From Hyphochytrium catenoides (lineage: Eukaryota; Protista; Hyphochytriomycota): DNA of 39,019 nt. This document shows, one piece after another, positions 532-37,343 of this stretch. Position 1 is the stretch's first letter. Each line of letters starts with the position of its first letter. The stretch lies in assembly GCA_900088475.1 (NCBI GenBank), contig FLMG01002943.1:1-39019 (forward strand), in the 5' to 3' direction. The notes under the pieces were generated by a model that worked only from the letters and a program-made list of their open reading frames with translations, did not search any database and was not told where the DNA came from. The position numbers and the translations under genes are program-made.

Positions 532-1060
532 ATGGAAGTCACGAGAAAGTCTGTCACGTCAAGGTAATGAGACTTTGGGAGCTCCTCTCTCTCTTTCTTT
601 ACTAGTCTTTTCCTCTTCTTTTCTCTCTTTCTCTCTTGTCTCCCTTTTCTCTCTCTCTTCGCTCCCTCTCTCTCTTTTCTCTTCTCTTTGTCTCTCTTTT
701 CTCTCTCTCACTCCGCCCTCTCTTTCCCTTTTCTCTCTTTTCTCCCCTCTCTTTACTTTCCTCTCTCTCTTAGAGTTACACTTCTCTCTCCCTGCCCTCG
801 ATAAGATCCGTTTCGGTAGGCCAGTATGCTTGCACCCCTTCTTCTGAGGTCCAATGGACGCTCTTTCTCTTGCGTTTCATAGCGCTTCTCTCTCTACTTT
901 TTCTCAACTTGGGGACTTCTTTCTCTCGCTTTTCTAGTGGCAGGATGAGCACGGAGGTGATGTCTCCGGTGAAGACTCGCCGAGTGGAGGAGAAGTCGGA
1001 ACTCCAGGTGCGAACACCGAAGTTTTTCGCCTTTCCGTTGAACATCCAGACTGTGTCTTT

Positions 1061-1102
<42 letters not shown>

Positions 1103-1237
1103 GTGGAGCTTCTTCATTGTGTGCCTTACTACGCTGTCACTCGCTTTTCTCTCTCTCTCGTTCCACCTTTATCTCTTATTGCCTTGTACTTAGAAGGCCA
1201 TAACATCACTGGCAGTACCTCATTACCTCTCTTTCTT

Positions 1238-1272
<35 letters not shown>

Positions 1273-1482
1273 TTCTCATGCTATCGGCATCGTTTCCTTT
1301 CTCCCAAGTTCCTCAACAACCGTCTGGAAGCATATGTTCTCCGTGTGAAGGAGATGGATGACGCTCGCTCCCACCTGGACCATGAGCTGAAGACAATCTC
1401 AACCCGTTATCAGAAGGAGATGGATGCTCTGAGAGAGAGACTCTCCAGAGATGTAGACACCCTACGAAGGTCGATTAATCTC

Positions 1483-1514
<32 letters not shown>

Positions 1515-4348
1515 TTTTTTTGTAGGCTTTTTGGCCTCAACGGTTTTGTCTTCAACCTCCTAACTCTAAAGCCCTCGCTCTTCGTTTTTCTCTCTCTCTC
1601 TCTCTCTCTCTCTCGTTTTTAAGCATTTTGGTCTCAACTGTTTTGTCTTCAACCTCCTAACTCTGAAGTCCTCGCTCTTCTTTTCTCTCTCCTCTCTCTC
1701 TCTCTCCGTGCGACAGTGAGCTGGAGTATGAGATCGACCAGAAGACGGTGCATCAAGTGAAGGCAGAGGACCTGACCCTGCAAGTCGAGAAGATGACCGC
1801 TCAGGTTAGAATAACGTCTAAGCTGAACCTAGAAGAAGAAGAAGAGAGAGAGAGAGAGATGGACCGGGACGAGAAGGAAAGCTGTGCCTTTAAGAGAGAG
1901 ATGACAGGAGAGCCTCCAGAACTCAGTTGCTCTAGGAGTAGTAATCTCATCACGCTCTAATTCTCCACAACCTCTTCTCTCTTTTTTTGCCGTCTTTGTA
2001 GCTCGAGGAGCTGAAGGGCGCGCGAGAGCAGGCCGAACAGCTGGAGAGCCAGCTGAGAAAGGAAAGAGAGGCTCTGAGAGAGGCTCAGGGAGAAGTTGAA
2101 CGCATTTCTCCTGAGAATAAGACCCTAAAGAGAAGAATTGCTCTTATTGAGAACGAGAACTCCAAGCTTCAGGACACGTGAGTCTCTCTCTCTCTTTCTC
2201 TCTCTCGCTTCAAAGGTCCCTCAGGGACCTCCTGCCTTCATTATTTCCGATGCAGTTCCTCTCTCTCTCGGGACCCTTCCTTGTGCATCGGAAGCCCTGA
2301 CAACTCATGTTGAAGGCTAAAAAACCTGGAAGAGAAGAGCTCTGAGCTACTGAAGGAAAACGCTGACCTGACGGCCACCAGAGACAAGCAACTTGGCGAG
2401 CTCACCAAGCAGGCGAATCAAAAAATGGTCCAGGCCAGGGAGCAATGGAAAAAGGAAGCGGAAGAGAGAATCTCTCAGGTGGGCTAAAGTACATTTAAAG
2501 AGAGGCAGGATATCTTCCTTGTCTCTATCTTCGTCTCTCTTTCCTTCGCATCTTTCTTTGTCATGACTGTGTCCGTCGTCTTCTTTCAAGTGTGCAACGT
2601 AGGCTTCTCACTGGGTCTTTCGTCCCCATGCTTGCCTGCTTTGCCCTCGTGCTATCCCTTTGTCTTTCATTCTCTATGTGTGAGATCTTCATCGCAGAAG
2701 TGTCTCTCTCCATTGTGGCGAATACCTTTCGTGTCTACTGACCAGTGCGTGTGTCTGTCTCTTTTCTCTTTCTTGTCACGCTCATTGCAGGTGGAGCAAG
2801 AGATCAAGTCACACTATGAGAAGACGATCAATAACATGGAAACCAGAGAGAAAGGAACCTCCAACGAGCTCAAGGGCGCCAGAGCGGAGATTGAGAGCCT
2901 CAACAGGCAGATTGAGACCCTACTCAAGACCAAGGATGTCAGTTATCTCTCTCTTTCTCTTACTCGCTCGCGTGCTCGCTCTCCTTGGACTCTCTCTTTG
3001 CTTTTGCGACGTTCTTCTCACGGCTCCTACCAAACAGGAGCTGGAGTTCAAGATTAAGCAGACTGAGGACGTTGGAAGAGAAGAAGCCAAGCGGTACAAG
3101 GACGAGATCAGGAGATTGGAGAAAGAAGTTTCCGCTCTTAGAGACTCTCAGGCAGAGTCAGAGAAACAGTTCAACGACCTCATGGATGTCAAGATCGGGC
3201 TCGACAATGGTATCCTGATCCTCTCTTCCTCCCGTCAAGCTAGCGCTCTCTCTCTCTCTCTCTCTCTTGACTCTCATCAGCGCATTTCTTCCTGCACTCT
3301 CTTATTCCTCCCCTTTTCATTTTCCTGTCTTTTCTAGCCCTCAATCTCCTTTATGCTGACACTGTCTCGTGCTATAGAAATCCGCCACTTTAAGGCAATT
3401 CTTGATATGGAGGAAGACAGAGTGGGCGTCTTCTCTCCTGAGAGAAAGAAGAGAAAGAAGTCTATAAAGACCCCAAAGAGCTCCGCCAAGAAGGCTCGCG
3501 TCGTTGCTGAGCCAGCTGTTCCTGACGTGGTCGTCCAGATGATTGATACAGAAAATGAGTGTGTGGTCATCAAGAATAACTCATCTGAGGCAAAGGATCT
3601 TTCTCACTGGACTCTCTCTAACAAAGCTGGAACCCAGGTCCGACCTATAGCGTCTGCTGCGCTCTCTTTCTTTCTTTTTCTCTTCTCTCTCTCTCTCTCT
3701 CTCTCTTTCCCCCTCGCCCCCCCCCTTAATTTTCAAGTCTGTTCCTGCGCTCTAACGTTACCTACTCTTTCTCTTGGCGACCCTGGAACTCTCGTAAAGA
3801 AGTCCTCTCCTCACTTTTCTCTCTTTCTCTCACTTTCCTCTCTCTTCTCTGTTCCCAAAATCCTACAGAAGTTTGAGTTCCCTGAGGGCTTCTCGATACC
3901 CGCGGATTCGAGCGTGCGCATCTGGAATGGAAAGAAGAACAAGTCAAAGCATTCTCCCCCTGAGAACATCTACTGGAGCTCTAAGTTTGTATGGAATGCA
4001 GATGGAGAGGCTGCACTGCTTCTCTCTCCTTCCGGAGACCTGGCCGCCTCCTCGGCTGGAGGCGAAGTGGCTGGAGGTGCTGAGACCGGCCCCTCTCAGG
4101 AATACGAGGAGGTGGAGGAGGAATATGAGGAAGAAGAGTACTACGAGGAAGAATACGAAGACGATCAGGCCGGAAAGGTAACTTCGTTGACTTGGCTTTG
4201 AAGTCCTTTTTGACGTCCATCTACCTGCCAAACATCCTTCTCTCCTGCATCCATCTGCCTCTTTCCCTCTCTTAATCTCTCGTCCTTTATCTAAAGACGT
4301 TGTCCTCTTGTGCAGGGAGATCAGGAGCAGAAGTGCACTATTATGTAA
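532..4348 (+). CDS. Nuclear lamin (B-type-like intermediate filament protein with lamin tail domain and CaaX box), 11 exons, 536 aa
   Basis: Exons 532-563, 938-1007, 1309-1469, 1717-1804, 2002-2177, 2316-2478, 2791-2937, 3038-3209, 3378-3637, 3869-4177, 4316-4348. All introns are GT-AG and phase-consistent, total 1611 nt. Head/coil 1A reads SPVKTRRVEEKSELQFLNNRLEAYVLRV (cf. lamin [28 protein letters not shown]). The IF end motif reads FNDLMDVKIGLDNEIRHFKAILDMEEDR. NLS is RKKRKK. The lamin tail domain reads VVIKNNSSEAKDLSHWTL...FEFPEGFSIPADSSVRIW...HSPPENIYW...VW. The C-terminus is CTIM-stop. Confidence 0.96.
1529..1680 (+). repeat. Direct repeat, two 55-bp copies (1529-1583, 1626-1680) in lamin intron 3
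   Basis: ttttggcctcaacggttttgtcttcaacctcctaactctaaagccctcgctcttc versus ttttggtctcaactgttttgtcttcaacctcctaactctgaagtcctcgctcttc; 4 mismatches. Confidence 0.95.
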
Positions 4349-4626: not shown

Positions 4627-7463
4627 TTATGTCGCTCGCCCGGCTGCCTCGACCCGTTGTTCCTTGAGCTTCTTCTTCTCCGCCTTCTTTCTTCTGATCT
4701 CCTGTAGTATCGCCTGTGCCTGCATCTCTTCCTCGACCATCTCTTGCTGCATCTGCAGCAATGCATCCTCCCAAGGCACGAGAGCCTTACCCATCATAAA
4801 CCGGCCGCTTTGCGGGTTGATCTGTGCAGTTTCAACCAGATAAGCCTTGCCCATCGTAGTTGACAGGTGTGCTTTCTGTTGAACAAAGAGGTCATTAGAA
4901 TCAACGGACAAGACGGCACTGCAGAGCTAGGAAAGTATGCAGAAGAGCGGAGAGTTGTGTCCAAGACACCTCGACAGGCTGCTGTGATGAATTTGAGGAG
5001 TAAAGAGAGCAGCCACCGTTGGGAACTAACCTTAATGAATGTGCCTTTAGCTCCCTCAGGCTTGGCTTGGGCAATAGCCATCTGAAGGATGCAGAAATAA
5101 GAAGATGCAGATGACCATGAGCGGGAAGCAGCTGAAGGTGTGTGGACAATGGTGGAAGAAGGTAAGCACAAGGGGTGGGGACAAAAGGGACAGCTCACGC
5201 TGACTGCTGACAATGCAAGTCCTAGATTTCACCCCCAAAGATACAAAGAGAAAGAGCAGACTCCTCTAGACAAATATTTCCGGCGTACAACACAGCTTGC
5301 TGACCCTGTTTTACCATGAAAGTCCTGATGTTCTCCAGAATCTTGTCCTCGTCCAGGTTTATCTATAAAGGAGAAGAAGAGAGAAGTCAGTGGAGATTCC
5401 TGCAGAGACTGTCAGAACTTCCTAGTCTCTTTCTGTAGCAAAGGGAGCCTTGTGAGCTACCGCTTCTAAATAAATGGCTTGGATCAACAAGGAAAAAGGA
5501 CAGCTTCATAAGAAGTTATCATTTACTAACCTTCCCGAGTCCAGCATGTAGGAGACCGTTCCTCTCGACTCTGAACTCGACCTGCCCTCCCTGTGCAGCC
5601 TAGTCGTGAAATGAAGAGAGTTAACAAGGTTGAAGAAGGGTGGCAAATGAACCGATCAGTGTACATTGACGCAACTAGCAGTAAAGTGGAGCTAGGCACG
5701 CAAAGAACAGAGGAGTAGATGGTGCGCTTTTTACAAAAGCAGGTTCCTTCAGACAAGTGAAAGACAAGATAAGCTTGTGACAAGTAGATTGACATCACGT
5801 GGAAGAGGACTCTCTTTGTCAGCAAGAAATCACTGATCCGGTTAAGAAGGGATGGTTACCTGAACAGCAGCTGCTACGTCTGTCGTCACAGTGCCGAGCT
5901 TTGGATTTGGCATTAACCCTCGCGGGCCCAGAATCTATAAGAGAGAGAAAGTAAGCAATCCGTAGCACGACCAAACGGCATGCATGAACCAATGGACAGA
6001 ACCAGGAGCAAAAGTGCTCGACGAAGCTAGAATAGAAGGCGAACTCTGGGCATAGAGAGGAAGGTAAGCAGCAAAAGCTAAGTCGAGATGAACATAGACA
6101 AAAAGAGAGACAAAAGCAGCGAGAGATCCCGGCAAGCCCCATCTTACTTTGCCTATTCTTCCCACGAGCGGCATCATGTCAGGAGTCGCGATACAGCGCT
6201 CGAAGCCGAGCTCTCCCTCTTGGATACTTTTCACAAGATCCTCTGCGCCGACAATGATGGCTCCAGCTGCCTTGGCTTCCTCTAAAATCACAGTGAAATA
6301 GAAAGAAGAAAAGAGAGGAGAAAAAAGGAGGAGTGAGAGGGCGGTAAGATACCATCCAACTGGAGCGCATTAACCCCGGCGCAATGCCAACGATCCCATC
6401 TGTAGCTTCTGCACTGTTGTTCACCCTTTGGGAGTCTTCCAATCTAGCGCCGTCTCTCTTGCTTCCTGATTATCTCTTTAGTCTTTCTTCCCAAGAATAA
6501 GCCCCACTTTGTCGTGGTCGTCTCATCGCCTCCTCGTCTTCCCTTTCTCATTTCATCGTTTGTCCGTTTTAGATACTTTGGACAGCCCTCTTTTCTCTCA
6601 TTTTGTTTTTCAGTGTGTCTCGGCATACTTACCAGCCTTAGCTCCACGAGCAAACACTGCGACTTTAATTGTCTTCCCTGTTCCATGAGGGAGCTGATAG
6701 GTTGTTAGAGAAGCAATAAGAAGAGAGAGAGAGAAGACACACTGGGCCTTGGTAGAAGGCAAGAATAGAGTTTGCGAGACATATTGACTGAAACTGGGAT
6801 TAGAATGAGAAAGTAGAGAACAGCAAACAAGGATAGCGTCAGGTCAGCTCAGACAAAAGGGTGAAGGCGCCTACCGTGACAACGCCTCTAACGCCCTGGT
6901 TGGGCTTTCTAGGATCCACTCCGAGCTTCACTACTATATCCACCGACTAATAACAGCCAAAGAGCGAGAGATAAAGCACTGATCAGTTCCAAGTCATTCA
7001 TTGAGATCAAGTCTACAAAAGAGAAGCGATTGGAGATGCAACGTGCTACATGGAAAAGTGGAAGGCCTAGTCTTAACTCACCTCAACGAATTTTCTATTT
7101 CTCTTCACACTATCAAGTTTTAGTCGGCGAACTGCTTCATTTACAGAAAAGACTTCCTGCAGAGGTTTGCTATCAGGCTCTGGCTGGCGTGAATGGAGAG
7201 GATCGGGGCAATCTCTCTTCGTCCTATATCCACCCACCCATACTCAGTGCGTAACTACTTCAGCTACTGACCTTCACTCTGTCCGCATTCGGATCATTAA
7301 AAGTAAGCTGTGCATGGTGAAATCCTCGTCTGTAGATTCGAGAAGACAAGTCAAATCAGTAACGCTTTAAGAGCCAGAGTCCTAAGATATAGGCCAGGGT
7401 GATGGACTACTACCTGGCCAGCAAGTGCCTGGGATTGTATAACAAGTGCCTTCCCCGATGCAT
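4627..7463 (-). CDS. MRPL1: Mitochondrial (bacterial-type) ribosomal protein uL1m, about 11 exons
   Basis: Minus-strand exons: 7414-7463, 7272-7329, 7082-~7216/7223 (junction uncertain), 6875-6946, 6633-6693, 6148-6281, 5860-5934, 5531-5599, 5315-5362, 5031-5081, 4627-4875. L1 motifs: [88 protein letters not shown]. The Arg-rich, acid-free N-terminus ([21 protein letters not shown]) resembles a mitochondrial presequence. Confidence 0.93.
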
Positions 7464-13541: not shown

Positions 13542-13569
13542 NNNNNNNNNNNNNNNNNNNNNNNNNNNN
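13542..13569. other. Assembly gap (28 N)
   Basis: Run of N beside a CT microsatellite; it truncates the PH-B exon. Confidence 1.
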
Positions 13570-14041: not shown

Positions 14042-14061
14042 NNNNNNNNNNNNNNNNNNNN
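14042..14061. other. Assembly gap (20 N)
   Basis: Run of N. Confidence 1.
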
Positions 14062-14750: not shown

Positions 14751-17700
14751 TTAGATTGCCTCTATAGCACGTGACCGTCTTGTCGAGTTGTAAATGCTAA
14801 GGAACACAAGGACTGCTGTGAGAGCTGCTACCACGAGCTCATGGTCCTTGTTGGGTCGCACCCCTAGACCAACTTGGCAGATAGCCCAGGAAAGAGACTC
14901 CTTGGAGAAGACGGATGAGAGGCTATCTGCTTCTGACCAATCGAACTGTGAGCAATATTCCTCAGGTGTCATACGAGGGCAGCCGTTCAAAGGCCTATGC
15001 CAGCCGAACTGTGCTATAGCTTGCGTGACAGATGGATTCTCTCTCTGGATGACTGGTAGGTATTCTCCTTTCTTCCTTCTTGACCACCAAGAGGAGAGCG
15101 AAGCGTTTCTCGCTATGATCTCAGCGTTCGGCACAGTTCTGGCCCAAGCGGAATCCCAGCGTGTGAAGTCATAAACATAGAGAGAAGCCCTTACAAATCT
15201 GGGTGGTCTCTCCTTGAAGGGATACTGCTCGGTGTCCAAGAGAGAGAGGACAGGTTGGCAGTCCTCGAGTATTTTATCAATAAGGTGGATAAACCAGCCT
15301 GGGTAGTGAGGCGCCGAGCCTAGGGCAGCGAACCACATCTAGGGAGTCAAAAAGAGAGACAGAGAGACAATAGGCAGGCGGAAGAATGTTTAGTAAGCTA
15401 TTAGTTCAGAAGACTCACTTTGCAAGAACGAGATCGGACTAGGAACCAGAGCCATAATAGAACTAAGAGAGCACATGACGATGGTACGGAGATAAGTCTG
15501 TTGAACGATGCCAAAGGTTTGGACCATTGACTTAGCTAGAAGAGGTCTACCTTTGTGACAAAAGATGCGAAGAACAAGGCCAAATACCTGCCAATCAAGT
15601 CGTGGTTGGTGCGGTATCACGATCTTTGGAGCCTGGTAGACGTCTCCTGGCTTGTAAGAGAATGGTATCTCTGTCCACTTGCGCCCGTCCAGAGAGCCCT
15701 CAATTATAATCTCAGGCCTAACAGCAAACTGTCAGCGCCCACACATCGTTCGCCCTCTGACTGAACTTGCGTTCGTTCCTCACACCCAACTTGTCTCTTT
15801 CGTATAGCTTCAGGACTTCAATCCTTACTGTTTCCCTTTCTGTCACCTATCTCTCGACCACATTTTCCCTCTTAGGTCCCTTTTCTCTTTCAAGGCCTCT
15901 GTCTCTGTTTCTTCCTGGCTCCCTCGGTCTCTTCCTTGCTCCTTCTTTCTCTCTCTTTCTCTCTGCTGTCTTCTCCCTTCTTCTCTCTCTCTCTCTCCGT
16001 CTCTCTCTCTCTCTGTCTCTCGCCGTCGCTCCACAAGGCTTTTCGCTGTTCGAGGGGCCTTTACTGGTGTACCTAGCCACTGGCCCGGCCCCGTCTATTT
16101 GTTCAGTCCGACCTCGAGTTCACTCACCTCTCAACTACCGAGGGCTCCACCCCTGCCCAGCCCTTAACACCGCTTTCTTCTGCCTTTCCGACTCCAGTCA
16201 TTCTTCTAAAGAGTCCATATCCAGAAGTGATCATGAGACCCTTTTCCGCCTGAGCTTGATACGCCTCCAGAGCGTGGTGAGGGAGTGTGCTGCGCAGGGA
16301 GTTGCTTATCGAGATGAGAGGCACAGAGGACAGAACAAAAAGGGAAAGAGAGAGGACACCAAGAGATACGGCCCTAAACCCCTTCAAATACTGGAAAACG
16401 ACGCTTCCTCTTGACGAAAGCATCTCTCGCCTAATGGAATAGATAGACACCGCAGCCAACAGAAGCCCAAAGGCCCATATGATAAATGGCAAGCTGCTAT
16501 CTACCCAGACCTATTAATGAGAGGTGAGAGCTAGATCGTGACGAGCAAGAAGTAGCTAGGCAGGAAGTAGAAAGGCAGGCATTATAACATAAGTAGGTAG
16601 ACATACGTTACAGAGAAGAGGAAAGCACAGCGGGAACTTGTTCAGAGTGCTTCTAGAGCTCTGAGAGAAGAGCGCGATCCTACCTGCATCTGCTCCACAG
16701 TAAATGCTGTCTTTATATTCAGGTACTCCAATGATTCTTCTCGATGGGTGTAAACCACGAACATATGAGAAAGGCAAAGGGAAAGCAAAAGGACGGTCAC
16801 TGTCCACAGACCAGTGGATGACAGAAGAGCCGATGTGGTGCTCTGGTCGGGTAGAGCAGAGGAGAGCCCATCATCTTCTAGACAAGGGATATTGAGCGCC
16901 ATCGTTAGCAGGTTGAAGAAGTTATAGTTCCCTGTAAGAATGATCATTATCTGCCATTCGTGGGTAAGCACAATGGTTAGAGTTTCGAAGTTTGTACGGC
17001 ACATGAAGAGCGATATTTTGCAAGGGAGAAGAGATCTTCAGATAGACCAACAAGTGTAACAACTCTGATGGTAGGACGACAATAGAGAGAGAGAGAGAGA
17101 GAAAGAAAGAAAGAAAGAAGGCGACGCAGTGCCAAGAAAAGAAGAGAAGCTATGACCTAGATTGATCTGCTGTACCTGCAGCTGTATTTGTAGGCAAGCT
17201 CCTAGTACTCTCAACCTTCTTATAGGCATTATAAGGAGCAGGGTGCACGGGATCTCAATCAAAAGGGTCGCCGCCACTGACAGACGACTGAAAAATGGGT
17301 GAACTTGGTGCCCATACCAAGAGAGGGGGTTGGCCAGTGGCTGTGGATAGAAGAGAGAAAAGACCTCAGACAATGACACCACGGAGTAGGAAAGGCACAC
17401 ATTGTTTGGAAGGGCGAGAAAAGGCAAGGACTTTCTGTGTCTCCTCACCTCAATCTTAGCTGCAGGGAGGGCGTACAGAGAGAGATAGGGGCAGAAGTCA
17501 CAGCATGGGCAGTAGACGTTTTACCTGGGTTGCAAAATGATACTCTAAGGCGGTCAGGTTTAGCCAGGTGGGACAGTGAGCCTGCACCTTCACCACCCCT
17601 GCCATCAGCATGAGCTTGAAGAATATCCAGCGTAGAAGCCATACAATCGGCACACGATTACTCTGTCTCGCAGAAAAGCCCCAAAAGCTCGCATAGAAGA

Positions 17701-18349
17701 TAGAGATAAAGCCCACCTCTAGGAGAAGAATATCCCATTGGAAGGACATGAAGGTCTGTCCAACGTGGAACAAAGAGAGATAGATTGCCCACAGAAGGAG
17801 AAAAAGGAAGGAGTTATGCCATCCCAGGGCAGTCAGAGCACTGAAGACCAGACCAAGGAGGCAGAGCAGCTCGTGGAAGGCATCAAAGTCTATTCTGGGC
17901 CCCAGTTCGTTGGCCCAAGAGAGTACGGGAAGACGCAGATAGAGAGAGGAGAAGGCCTTAATGAACGTTAGGGTGTCTTCTGTGTGAGGAACCTCTCCAA
18001 GCCTCTTCTTTATATTGCTGAAGTAGGTCTCTGCAGGCATCAGCCCATGCCTGCCTACTAGGCCCGGGTATTGAAGATAAAAGGACAGAATGGCTGCGAA
18101 GTAGAGAACACCAAGGGAAGAGAGAAACCGCGGCCTCCATGGCGATTCTCTCGCGCTGTTCTCATCTCCGCCGCCCAGAAGTGCATTTGTGCCATCTGCG
18201 CTGATTGTGGTGGGGCTGCCATCATGACCTTTACCAGGTCCGTCATAATCATGGCCCTTATCCTTCTCTGTCGGGCTTTCATGACCTCGGGGACCTCCTG
18301 CCCTTGCTGAAGTGGTTGTCGGCCGCTTCCTCAAGTTAACTCCTGACAT
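14751..18349 (-). CDS. Lipase maturation factor family protein (LMF2-like), 6 exons, 785 aa
   Basis: Exons 17525-18349, 17176-17340, 16684-16950, 16128-16510, 15588-15717, 14751-15338, phase-consistent, 2358 nt. LMF motifs: GLVGRHGLMP, VGQTFMSFQWDILLLEVGF, FKLMLMAGVVK...CPTWLNLTALEYHFATQPL, ILTGNYNFFNLLT, YGLFRRMTG, RPEIIIEGS, YKPG...PHQPRLDWQMWFAALG. Confidence 0.95.
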
Positions 18350-19508: not shown

Positions 19509-22315
19509 CTAGCAGGGTCCACAGACTGGAATATTGCTCGACAGGACGAGTGTGAATTCTCGAGATAAATTTTGCAGAGACCACTTGCCCGTCATTCTTC
19601 CGTCCACTCGCACTCCTTCATAGGAGATCACATGCGTCTTATACGCCTTAGAGAAGGTAAAGGCGCCGTCTGTGACGCTATAAAAAGCCCCATAGACGCT
19701 GAAAGGCCCGATAGAGTCGATTCCAAAGCCTCTCATTATCTTCCTTCCTCCTCTCGTCGTACTCTCCATCAAATGCACTGACATTGGATGCTCTGTACCG
19801 AACTGAATGAAGTGTCCGTCCCAGGTCGAGACCACCGTATTGCGGATAACGGACCTGCTCCCCTGGGAGTCAACCTCCTGCAGAATAAAGTCGAACTCAC
19901 CCTGGCTCTGACTGCTCGGCAGCTCCCAGCGCCCGGTAACTCTTTCTTCCTTGAGGATCCCGTTGTAATGTACCACGTAGGTTCCATAATCCTTCTCGAA
20001 GTACACGCTGCCCGCCGACAGAGGTGCAACAGAAGAGGCGGACTGCAAGGTGCCACTTATCTTGAAGGATCCAAAGACGTCCATCCCCTTTCCTGACAGG
20101 GCGCCGCCTGCCCCTACCGTCAGTTTCACCTCTATAGCATAGCGGTTTGACCGATAGGTGTAGAAGCCAATGCATTGGTAGCTCTGCGGCAGAGAAAAGG
20201 ATGGAGGAGGTAGGGAGAGAGGAGGGGAACTCAATGAGAAGGAAGGGAGAGAGGCTAGTAACCCCGTAGAGGGAGAGGGGGAAGCAGACGCAGAGAGGAG
20301 CAAAGATGTCGGAGGAGTTTCGGGCGAGATAAAGGGTGTTCCACAAGTGTGCGGCCATCCCTCTTGATCCTCGGAGATGGAAGGCGAGGGAAATGTAGAC
20401 AGCTCTGGAGGAAGAACTTCAGGCTCCTCTTCTCTCTTCTCTTCTGCTTGTGTCTCTTCTCCCTTGCCCTCACTGCTGAAAGAGATGCAGTCAGCGCCCT
20501 CTCCTAAATTCCAGTCCAAGGTCATACTCGTCCCATAGGTTTCTTGGAGCTTCCACCTCAGGCAGCGGAGGACCTCTCTCTTGATAGCATTTATCTCTTC
20601 CTCTTCATGCTGTCTCATCCTGATGATGCTCTTCCTTTTTCTCTCTATTTGCCGCTTGACCTCTTCGGCAATATCAACCCGGATAAGCCCTCGGACCACT
20701 TCTAAGGCCAGAGAGAACTCAAATTTGGCAGAAGAGACATCACCAAAGGAGAGCGTCGCCTCTGACGATAGAGCAGATGAGATGAATCTCGCTACTCCAG
20801 CACCCGTAATCCTGGATGAGGGAGGTAGTTCTGCTAGCTTTAAGTTGGGCATCCTTGCCATTACCAGGAGACCCTCATCGGAGAGAGAAGACAGAAAGAG
20901 ACTCTCAGCGTCCTGGGTTGGCTCCTCAGCGTGGAGGCAGCGGATCCTTGGGCAGTGAGCTTGTAAGGAAGCCAACAGTGCATCCGAGGTGACAGCTGCA
21001 TTGGATGTTAATGGGGCAAGCGACAGGGATATAGATGGCACCAAACAATACGCCCAGGAGACAGCACAAAGCGTAAAGCGCCACAGAGGTTATGAGGAGA
21101 CCGAGGGGAGAGGAAAAGTTAGTCGGGTGGCCATTTACGAACTTCACTCAGTCCCTTACCATTCATAAAGTCTCTTCCCTGAATGCAAAGCTCTTCCAAC
21201 GCCGGGCAGCACCTCAGCAGCGCTTCGATATCTCTGTGCAGCGCCTCATTGGATGGAAGAACTCCTTCTCTCTCCCTTTCGCCCAGGCTGGCGATAGGAG
21301 TCTCTACTAGCTTTAAGCTTCTAATGCCCATGATGGACGCAGAGCTCATCGCCTGCACGAAGGAAAGAGAAGAAGCGCTTGTGGGAGAGAAATCTGCAGA
21401 TGTGAGCTCCCATCTGCAGAGATTCCGACAGTTCTCGAAGAAGTAACGCAGAACAGCGGGAGAGGGACCATTGCTAGCAGTGCGAGGACAGTCTAACGCC
21501 TCCAGACTTGGCGCCAAGTGAGAAAGAGACCCATAGAAATCATCCCCAAAGCCATCTGAGCCCAATAGAGGGCGAGAAAGAGATAGCGAGCGGAGGCCTC
21601 CATTAGCCTTTTTCCATCGAAACAGAAAGAGAGAAAAGGCTTCTGCCGTCGGGCCATAGACAGACAACTTCAGTCTCTTCTTTTTCCCTTGAGGAGACTG
21701 CCAAGCTTCAAACAGCGTAGTGTCATACATTTGACTCTGCACTGCGTGGCCTTTCAGTGTTAGCGATGTGACTCTGGGGCAGTACCGTGAGAGCAGGTCT
21801 AGCACCTTGTTCGTACCCATCCAGGGAGGAATGGACCTGGAGGTAGCACTAGCAGACGAAGAGAAGTTATGATACTCGAGCGAGAAAGAGCGAAGAAGAG
21901 AGAGAGATGTGACAAGCTCTTCCCAAAAAGAAAGAGAGGAAGGGCCCACATCATTGGGACGGAGAATGAGGCTGAGGCTGAGCTCCTGAATCGGTTGTTT
22001 GTGCTGCCTGATCACCTGCACCAGCTCCGAGAGAGAGCTTCTAAAGTTGTTAAGAGAGAGAGACGTCTCTTCGTCTCCCTGTCTCTCATCTCCCCTTCCT
22101 GCGGCGCTAATTGAGCGCAACATCCTGGAGAGCCTATAAAACTCTTTGGAGACGACCGACAGACTGTGAAGAGAAAGAGATGAAGAGGCTCCTCCTTCTT
22201 CCTCTCTTCTCTGTCCCTGGTCCAGGGTGAGGCAGAGCACTCTCAGCAACAGATGCTCTGGGAGAGAGAGTAATCCTCTCGTCGGTCGATCAGCAGCCAT
22301 GCCTAAGATAGCCAT
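19509..22315 (-). CDS. F-box / leucine-rich-repeat (RNI-like) protein with two C-terminal beta-rich repeats, 2 coding exons, ~880 aa
   Basis: ORFs 21119-22357 and 19509-21044 join in frame through a GT-AG intron at 20996-21159 (G|GTAAGG...TGCAG|CT). N-terminal F-box-like LLSLPEHLLLRVL...LSVVSKEFYRLS. Cys-containing LRR turns LSRYCPRVTSLTL, FFENCRNL, LRCCPALEELCI, LQAHCPRIRCL. The start ATG (22315 or 22300) is uncertain. Confidence 0.75.
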
Positions 22316-22452
22316 CTCAGTGCCCGAGAGAAACCGATGCTTGCGAAAGAAGGGCAAATCGACAAAACTAATGCAAGAATGAAAGATAGGCAGAGATTAC
22401 GTGCCAGAGGGAAAGGACGGACTGTCGTGGCAATAGAAAGGTACAGAGAGAC

Positions 22453-25866: not shown

Positions 25867-27417
25867 ATGAAGCTCCAAAGCAGCTCATCAACGCTTTTCA
25901 CAGCCATTGCACTGGCCCTGGTGCGCCTCTCATCGGTAGCTGACGGCACCGTCCTACCAATCTCCATCGAAAGGCTGAATAGAACCTACCATGAGAAAGA
26001 CTTCAGGCGCCATTTGCAGACAGAGACTCTCAAGAACCAGAATGGCGCCTACTATGCCAGCACAACCTTCTCAGTGGGCGGTCAGGCTTTTCCTTTCCTC
26101 CTTGATACTGGTTCATCAGATCTCTGGATAACGTCAGAGGCGGTGAGCGACCCGTCCACTATTTTCACTTCGTATGGGACAGAATGCTGTCAGGCTGGGG
26201 GCGGTGGGTGCTGCACTGGCTCAAACTATTGCAGTGCCCAAGGCGTAGGGAAAACAGACTGCAGCTTCAGCTTAATTTATGGAATGGGACCCACAACAGG
26301 ACTTGTAGGTCTTACTAGTGCGTCAATAGGGAGCTACTCCTTTGAGACACTACAGGCAGGGCTAGCCACGTCCACGAATAGCGGGACTAACTCTATCTTA
26401 GGCCTGGCCTTTCCTGGCGTCAGGGTCTTTACATCCCCTGTGCCACTGCTCAGCTTGGGGAGCTTTACCTTCCAGTTTAACTCGAACCTCCTAGGAACAT
26501 GGGGAAACAGTCTTCTGCTGGGAAATAGTGCAAATGTTAGTCTTCCCGCGTCTCTCTCCTGGCATACGCTTCCTGTCCTGAAAGATGGAGGACCGACTAA
26601 AGGACAGTATGGCCACTGGTCTGTCACGTTGACTAAGTTCTCTCTAGGGAGCAACACTCTGTCTAGCACTCCTCAGCCGATGCTGGTTGACAGTGGGACA
26701 TCCTATATAATCATCCCCAACCCGCTCTTCAAGCAACTGATCTCCTACTTAGGGATAACGACCAAGTGTACTCTGATGCAAGGGGCGTACACTTGTGCAA
26801 GCATAAAGGGCTTTCCTAGCCTCACGATTAGCTCTGTCACCTCTCCGACGTCGGTCACATCCTTCACCCTCACGCCTGCGCAGTATATGGGGCAGTACAG
26901 TGCAGGGCAATACACTTTGCTCATACAACCGTCTCCTGAGGGCACCACAGAGTGGATCTTGGGCCTATCTTTCATGAGAGCGTTTCCTTATGTTCGCTTT
27001 GATGCCAGTCGCGATGACGCCGCGACTATCAGCTTTGCTTGTGGCTCGGCTTGCGTTTCTAGCTATGCAGACAACACTCCTCTTGACGACTCAGAGGACA
27101 AGAATGACGCCGCAGAGGGACACAACTGGGTGTACTACGTGACAGTGATAGGCATTCCTGTCGTAGGAGCCATCATTGTACTCTTTGCTATTTTCGCTAT
27201 TCGTGGGCGAATCAGACGTAACAGAGCTAAGAGACAGCTGGCTCTGCAGCAGCAAAAGAGAGACCAGCACGAGCGACTGCAGGTACAATTCTACAATGAA
27301 ATCGAGACGCCTCCTCACTTTGTCGTGGACACCACGCCCCATCGGCCTCAGCCTCCTAGGGCTACGAATAGAGATGGAAAGACTCATCGAAGTCAAGCGC
27401 TTCATGCGTCGGTGTAG
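25867..27417 (+). CDS. Pepsin-family (A1) aspartic protease, type I membrane protein, intronless, 516 aa
   Basis: Signal peptide; catalytic motifs LLDTGSSDLW (Asp codon 26104) and LVDSGTS (Asp codon 26689); flap Tyr in FSLIYGMG; ILGLA and WILGLSFMR psi-loop motifs; TM helix YYVTVIGIPVVGAIIVLFAIFAI followed by basic RGRIRRNRAKR. Confidence 0.95.
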   Translation: MKLQSSSSTLFTAIALALVRLSSVADGTVLPISIERLNRTYHEKDFRRHLQTETLKNQNGAYYASTTFSVGGQAFPFLLDTGSSDLWITSEAVSDPSTIFTSYGTECCQAGGGGCCTGSNYCSAQGVGKTDCSFSLIYGMGPTTGLVGLTSASIGSYSFETLQAGLATSTNSGTNSILGLAFPGVRVFTSPVPLLSLGSFTFQFNSNLLGTWGNSLLLGNSANVSLPASLSWHTLPVLKDGGPTKGQYGHWSVTLTKFSLGSNTLSSTPQPMLVDSGTSYIIIPNPLFKQLISYLGITTKCTLMQGAYTCASIKGFPSLTISSVTSPTSVTSFTLTPAQYMGQYSAGQYTLLIQPSPEGTTEWILGLSFMRAFPYVRFDASRDDAATISFACGSACVSSYADNTPLDDSEDKNDAAEGHNWVYYVTVIGIPVVGAIIVLFAIFAIRGRIRRNRAKRQLALQQQKRDQHERLQVQFYNEIETPPHFVVDTTPHRPQPPRATNRDGKTHRSQALHASV

Positions 27418-36382: not shown

Positions 36383-37343
36383 AGGACGAGGGGTAACGAG
36401 GAGAGATCACAGTAGGGGCAGGTCAAACGCATTTAGTCCTCTTTCTGTCGACTTATTAGCGGAGAGGAAGTGAGGGGAAGTTACGCAGGGAGGAGAGAGT
36501 CGAAACGAGCACGGAAGTGGTATAGAGAGAGGCACAAGAGAACGCGAAAGTGGGAGAGAGAGAGAGAGAAAGAAAGAAAGAAAGGAAAGGAGTAGAAGAG
36601 AGCGAGAGAGAGAAACGCCCGGTAAGGAAATGAAGAGGTGGACAAATAGAGCAAGAGAGGTAACGCTGCCTCAACCAAAGGGTCATTTTCACCTGGTCGA
36701 AAGAGAAAGTGTGGAAGAGAAAGACGGAATGGTTCTGCAATGCAGCGAAGAGGTGTCCGCCATGGGAGAACTTGACTTTCTTGCAGTTTCTGAGGTTAAA
36801 GTGCTTGAAAGGCTGAATATCGCTGATGATAATGTTCATCATTGTCACTGAGTTACTGAAGGCCGCTAAGAGAAGAGTGCCTGATGGATGAAAGGAAATA
36901 GAAGTGGGGACCTGGAGGAAAGAAAGAAAGAGTGGATAAGGAGAAGGAACAGAGAGACGAGGGACAAGAGACAGACAAAGAGAGAAGGAAAGAGAGAAAG
37001 AGAGAGAGAGACAGNNNNNNNNNNNNNNNNNNNNNNNNNNNNNNNNNNNNNNNNNNNNNNNNNNNNNNNNNNNNNNNNNNNNNNNNNNNNNNNNNNNNNN
37101 NNNNNNNNNNNNNNNNNNNGGTACAGAGAGGGAGGGAAAAGAGAGGTAGACAGGAAAGAGAGAGCGTTGTCCCAAGAGCCATTGGGATGAAGGGACACAG
37201 GAGGCATTGGGAGAGACGCGTGGGACGAGTGGTAAGAGAAGAAACAGGAGAGTAGGTACGTGCTAGCTAAAGGAAGCTAAAAACATTTGGAAATGCTTCG
37301 GACAGGGTTTAACGGATGCGCAGCGGGCTAGGTGAAAAGAGAC

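Follow-up and report, generated by a model that had tools for sequence, protein, structure and literature searches.

The window, by which we mean the whole stretch of 39,019 nt of Hyphochytrium catenoides DNA analysed here, begins with a lamin gene on the forward strand. Its 11 exons, joined via GT..AG introns, give a frame of 1611 nt that is stop-free until the terminal TAA and predicts a complete protein of 536 residues (Table 1). An earlier, sequence-only reading of this DNA had described 11 spliced exons with a series of lamin hallmarks; all of these were recovered in the single stop-free frame. Its description of a complete lamin with a B-type-like architecture was upheld as well, by a lamin tail domain (LTD) above the Pfam cutoff, by pieces of the Pfam Filament profile in the correct order and by matches to lamin Ig folds. 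Downstream of the lamin gene, the window contains a lipase maturation factor gene, an aspartic protease gene, several open reading frames (ORFs) and assembly gaps.

Table 1 Parts of the lamin gene and other features of the window. The 2016 sequence is the H. catenoides entry of Koreny and Field (PMC5630835).
Feature	Position	Strand	Content and support
Lamin gene	532..4348	+	11 exons, predicted protein of 536 residues
Exon 1	532..563	+	Putative coding exon; start codon and residues 1-10 (MEVTRKSVTS); first ATG in the window; donor AAG/GTAATG
Exon 2	938..1007	+	Head with Cdk1-type site SPVK; start of coil 1A (RRVEEKSELQ)
Exon 3	1309..1469	+	Coil 1A consensus FLNNRLEAYVLRV onward; Pfam Filament profile 9-60; alignments to relatives
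Exon 4	1717..1804	+	Rod (coil 1B); both junctions gap-free against 8 relatives
Exon 5	2002..2177	+	Rod; needed for the 288-residue motif spacing; missing from the 2016 sequence
Exon 6	2316..2478	+	Rod (REQWKKEAEERISQ); aligns with oomycete AQWKKDTEERIEG; missing from the 2016 sequence
Exon 7	2791..2937	+	Rod (coil 2); Pfam Filament 187-229; missing from the 2016 sequence
Exon 8	3038..3209	+	End of coil 2B with FNDLMDVKIGLDN; Pfam Filament 243-297, E 8.5e-7
Exon 9	3378..3637	+	Rod end EIRHFKAILDMEED, candidate Cdk1-type site SPER, predicted NLS KKRKK, first LTD half; Pfam LTD 3-47; lamin A and B1 PDB matches
Intron 9	3638..3868	+	231 nt, in frame and stop-free; splits the tail domain; no insertion at this site in relatives
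Exon 10	3869..4177	+	Second LTD half with HSPP, acidic E/Y tract; Pfam LTD 50-104; PDB lamin A/C Ig fold
Exon 11	4316..4348	+	GDQEQKCTIM and stop; CaaX box CTIM
Small convergent ORF	4627..4911	-	94 residues; no Pfam match
Assembly gaps (N runs)	13542..13569, 14042..14061, 37015..37119		Within CT/GA repeats
Lipase maturation factor gene	14751..18349	-	LMF1, 87.6 bits, in the first exon; LMF1_C, 61 bits, in the last
Two long ORFs	19509..22357	-	511 and 412 residues; no Pfam match
Aspartic protease gene	25867..27417	+	Single exon, 516 residues; predicted pepsin type, Pfam Asp 89 bits

Domain architecture and rod length

Profile scans were run on the exon pieces and on the stretch 3380-4177, which is stop-free and includes the in-frame intron 9, and whole-length comparisons were made locally. 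The predicted protein carries SPVK, a full Cdk1 consensus, at residues 20-23, followed by EKSELQFLNNRLEAYV, the rod end motif FNDLMDVKIGLDNEIRHFKAILDMEED, KKRKK at residues 359-363, the LTD with HSPP and the terminal CTIM. The intermediate filament (IF) consensus motifs are present at both rod ends, LNNRLEAY at residue 36 and FNDLMDVK...FKAILDMEE at residues 324-349. Between them, the Pfam Filament profile was matched in three pieces in the correct order, 9-60 in exon 3, 187-229 in exon 7 and 243-297 (of 313) in exon 8, with 15.5, 15.7 and 29.3 bits, respectively, each of which alone is below the 40-bit cutoff. Over its full length, the H. catenoides lamin aligned to proteins carrying PF00038. 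The Pfam LTD profile reached 45 bits on the stretch 3380-4177, against a cutoff of 34.3, and the solved Ig-fold tails of lamins A/C, B1 and B2 were matched at E-values of 4e-6 to 0.04, with HSPP aligned residue for residue.

A basic nuclear localisation signal (NLS) is predicted between rod and tail in SPERKKRKKSIKTPKSSAKKA (residues 356-376). Candidate Cdk1-type sites flank the rod, SPVK on one side and SPER (residues 356-359), just before KKRKK, on the other; in the alignment, SPVK coincides with the SP site in the oomycete and shark proteins. The tail domain is followed by an E/Y-rich acidic tract and then by the CaaX box CTIM and the stop codon, and the full-length relatives all end in C-x-[IVM]-M. 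The terminal Met of a CaaX box directs farnesyltransferase; given this residue, CTIM is predicted to be farnesylated. As judged from its sequence, the protein qualifies as a nuclear lamin by its rod motifs, LTD, NLS, CaaX box, Cdk1 sites and position in the tree, and only its rod length, compared with an animal-type rod, is ambiguous.

The motifs LNxRLxxY of coil 1A and FNDLMDVK of coil 2B lie 288 residues apart, and exactly this spacing was found in all four relatives of the same clade that were measured, the Pythium, Aphanomyces and Plasmopara lamins and the transcript P0079. Elsewhere, keratin 20 had a spacing of 276 residues, a haptophyte lamin one of 299 and shark lamin B1 one of 321. The H. 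catenoides rod is 33 residues shorter than that of shark lamin B1, the only animal lamin measured, and longer than that of keratin 20. What sets a lamin-length rod apart from that of vertebrate cytoplasmic IFs is six additional heptads in coil 1B. We tentatively suggest, with somewhat less than even confidence, that the rod length is fixed at 288 residues in the lamins of hyphochytrids and oomycetes; if this is general, pseudofungal lamins would form a farnesylated lamina of another axial repeat. Should the 288-residue rod hold in more species, the culturable H. catenoides could serve to test the lamina in a walled, fungus-like cell.

The shorter rod also bears on whether the protein belongs to the lamina at all. 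Lamin duplicates with non-nuclear roles exist, and the lamin of Phytophthora infestans, which like that of Symbiodinium enters the nucleus and forms filaments in HEK293T cells, carries a CaaX box and yet does not become concentrated at the nuclear rim of human cells (PMC5630835). These points would fit a filament protein that derives from a lamin but is cytoplasmic or diverted in some other way, comparable to the second ichthyosporean copy or to animal cytoplasmic IFs. Diverted copies, however, are devoid of the Cdk1 site, the NLS and the CaaX box (PMC5630835), all three of which the H. catenoides protein keeps, and we regard such a diversion as quite improbable.

Splicing, start codon and read support

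When the protein was aligned locally with eight full-length relatives, the stretches around the junctions of introns 2-9 were all free of gaps. Exon 2 aligned without gaps to oomycete SPMKSKRLDEK and to shark lamin B1 SPTRISRLQEK, and continuing the frame from exon 4 into intron 4 leads to a stop codon (ORF 1748-1960). The introns of the lamin gene carry CT or GA dinucleotide runs, and on the coding strand the pyrimidine content is 39% in the exons versus 66-80% in nine of the ten introns. Within the rod, the splice sites are further supported by the shared 288-residue spacing, which a single misplaced site would break.

Exon 1, a putative coding exon, is the weak point of the model. Relatives possess nothing that corresponds to residues 1-10, RNA support is missing as well, and the proteins of the eight aligned relatives begin near residue 14 of the H. 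catenoides lamin, so that translation might alternatively start at ATG 945. The assignment of exon 1 is based on its good donor and on the gap of 374 nt to exon 2, which is CT-rich and resembles the other introns; ATG 532 is preceded by no other ATG in the 531 nt upstream.

Reads supported one of the ten junctions, that of intron 9, and came from runs labelled as other organisms. Contigs from the runs X6 and X5 join positions 3634/3637 to 3866/3869 exactly at the GT..AG borders, with the 231-nt intron removed. The form with exons 9 and 10 joined therefore exists, whether as cDNA or as intron-free alleles of relatives.

Could the neat protein be an artefact of splice sites chosen by eye at a decaying or mis-modelled locus? 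A search listed no RNA runs of H. catenoides, and exon 1 is without homology support. Against this stand ten canonical introns with an unbroken frame and gap-free junctions, the exact agreement in rod length with four relatives, the strong contrast in pyrimidine content between exons and introns (in nine of ten introns) and the presence of one junction in assembled contigs. Taking both sides into account, we consider a mis-modelled or decaying gene very unlikely, even less probable than a diverted filament protein.

The reads gave several further observations. The spliced lamin contigs, spanning 3476-4080, are 99% (X5, a run guessed to be DNA) and about 95% (X6, a run guessed to be RNA) identical to the window, and the labels of the two runs name two further organisms. 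The samples may thus have contained close relatives or strains of H. catenoides, unless the libraries were mislabelled. A second X6 contig shares only 38 nt with the gene (3168-3205, the FNDLMDVK region) and then encodes AEITAYRRIL; this further lamin-type rod end stems either from a paralogue or from a different organism present in the sample. In the best DNA run, X1, the region 560-2750 was covered by contigs in pairs, each of roughly half the depth, with many SNPs and small indels in the introns and 15 changes within 2601-2749. These pairs look like the two haplotypes of a heterozygous diploid.

Relatives, previous report and proposed function

A search of a representative library with the tail region returned 156 proteins at E-values up to 0.001, none of them above about 45% identity; the H. 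catenoides protein itself was absent from this library. When the whole spliced protein was scored locally, the best matches were full-length proteins ending in a CaaX box. The best named full-length matches in this local set were lamins of the oomycetes Pythium insidiosum, four Aphanomyces species and Plasmopara (annotated 'lamin-l-like'), with 31-33% identity over nearly the full length and E-values down to 7e-82. We calculated a maximum-likelihood tree of 35 rows, which included one animal lamin B1, that of shark, and was rooted on it. Here the H. catenoides lamin is sister to a clade of oomycete lamins and unnamed transcripts with a support of 100/98, and haptophyte lamins branch further out.

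With the oomycete lamins (Pythium, Aphanomyces, Plasmopara, Phytophthora), the H. catenoides protein shares the architecture, the rod spacing, an SP-x-K site in the head, the NLS, the LTD and a C-x-x-M end, but besides the identity of only 31-33% it differs in its tail, since the oomycete tails possess neither HSPP nor a long E/Y acidic tract. With animal B-type lamins, represented by shark lamin B1 and by the lamin A/C and B1 Ig folds in the PDB, it has in common the order of head Cdk1 site, rod, NLS, Ig-like tail, acidic tract and farnesylation box, and the tail HSPP, which aligns exactly. The CaaX box lies on a separate last exon, a possible further resemblance to animal lamin genes. The protein differs from them in having a shorter rod and only 24% identity to shark lamin B1, and it falls in a stramenopile clade apart from theirs. 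No descent from within the animal lamin B group was found, and the term B-type used in the sequence-only reading applies to the architecture only, not to orthology. Dictyostelium NE81, which was compared by description and not by sequence, is likewise a lamin from outside the animals and has a rod, an NLS and a CaaX box, but belongs to another supergroup. We take its tail domain to be much less recognisable than that of the H. catenoides lamin. In two reports, NE81 is described as behaving experimentally as a lamin (PMC6406624, PMC11816917).

Lamins of oomycetes and rhizarians were already reported by Kollmar in 2015 (PMC4448529), and Koreny and Field listed the Hyphochytridiomycetes among 12 lineages with lamins in 2016, mentioning also that several eukaryotes have LTD-like proteins devoid of coiled coils (PMC5630835). 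Supplementary Table S1 of the latter study contains a Hyphochytrium catenoides lamin, a compound of eight CAFC02 WGS contigs joined by hand. The paper on the H. catenoides genome from 2018 never uses the word 'lamin' (PMC5795050). Each of the peptides LNNRLEAYV, DLMDVKIGLDNEI and QKCTIM was found a single time in the supplement of the 2016 study, always within the H. catenoides entry or alignment. The match was judged from long identical stretches, extending from LNNRLEAYV to QKCTIM, because the text of the supplement was machine-read and noisy. In addition, the entry contains QVRITSKLNLEEE...KESCAFKRE, which is the translated intron 4 of the present gene (ORF 1748-1960). The shared peptides and the same read-through of intron 4 identify our gene as the one reported in 2016.

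The entry and the present model differ in several respects. In the 2016 sequence, which begins only within coil 1A, the head and SPVK are therefore absent, a run of X takes the place of exons 5-7, part of intron 4 is translated, and the end of the acidic tract is replaced by RCPLVQ, the last six codons of intron 10. A hyphochytrid lamin as such has therefore been known since 2016, and only the complete gene model is new, that is the head with SPVK, the SPER site, the missing part of the rod and the true tail EEEYYEEEYEDDQAGKGDQEQKCTIM. The sequence-only reading had assumed an uncharacterised lamina in this lineage, which is correct with regard to experiments on the hyphochytrid lamina but not with regard to the lamin itself, which was on record (PMC5630835). 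That lamins are older than animals and that hyphochytrids possess one has been in print since 2016 and carries little weight as a discovery. The value lies in a corrected full-length model of a protein that was previously gapped and partly mistranslated; it confirms that the ancestral motif set is preserved in full in the hyphochytrid lineage, and it also provides a clean construct for localisation and farnesylation tests.

The previous report and the tree also bear on the host. The H. catenoides genome has 3.64 introns per gene with a mean intron length of 208 bp, and the organism has one anterior flagellum (PMC5795050). A non-animal flagellated host, possibly a stramenopile, had been proposed from the sequence; this proved right, H. 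catenoides being a flagellated stramenopile. The HSPP, the acidic tract and the C-x-I-M end might bring to mind an ordinary animal lamin, whether the DNA came from an animal host or from a contaminating animal. This reading was rejected because of the tree, the oomycete-like rod spacing and the published H. catenoides sequence (PMC5630835), to which the higher identity to oomycete lamins and an intron size and density that fit the genome statistics (PMC5795050) can be added, and it has hardly any probability left.

We are highly confident that the gene encodes a single-copy-type nuclear lamin of the hyphochytrid stramenopile H. catenoides, inherited vertically with the lamins of the sister group, the oomycetes. 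This assignment draws on the architecture, homology, phylogenetic position and identity with the published entry, and the cellular steps are proposed by analogy with animal B-type lamins. According to this analogy, KKRKK would direct nuclear import, and CTIM would be farnesylated, then trimmed and methylated, so that the protein could be held on the inner nuclear membrane. The rod would form parallel coiled-coil dimers that assemble head-to-tail via the conserved end motifs of coils 1A and 2B, and the Ig-like tail may bind partners. Phosphorylation by Cdk1 at SPVK and SPER, on either side of the rod, might drive disassembly or remodelling at division. Anchoring at the rim is not assured, since the P. 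infestans lamin with its CaaX box was not enriched there in human cells (PMC5630835).

Other features of the window

Most introns across the window are crowded with (CT)n or (GA)n runs, and the assembly gaps sit in such repeats as well. The small convergent ORF starts about 280 nt past the lamin stop codon, which implies that the 3′ ends of the two genes are close or overlapping. Further downstream, the lipase maturation factor gene and the two long ORFs without Pfam match are encoded on the reverse strand. For the aspartic protease ORF, a word-based homology search gave no match at an E-value of 1e-10 and an exact look-up was also empty, which means only that the proteins of the H. catenoides genome are absent from the collections searched. 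The predicted protease has a signal-like start and a putative C-terminal membrane anchor.
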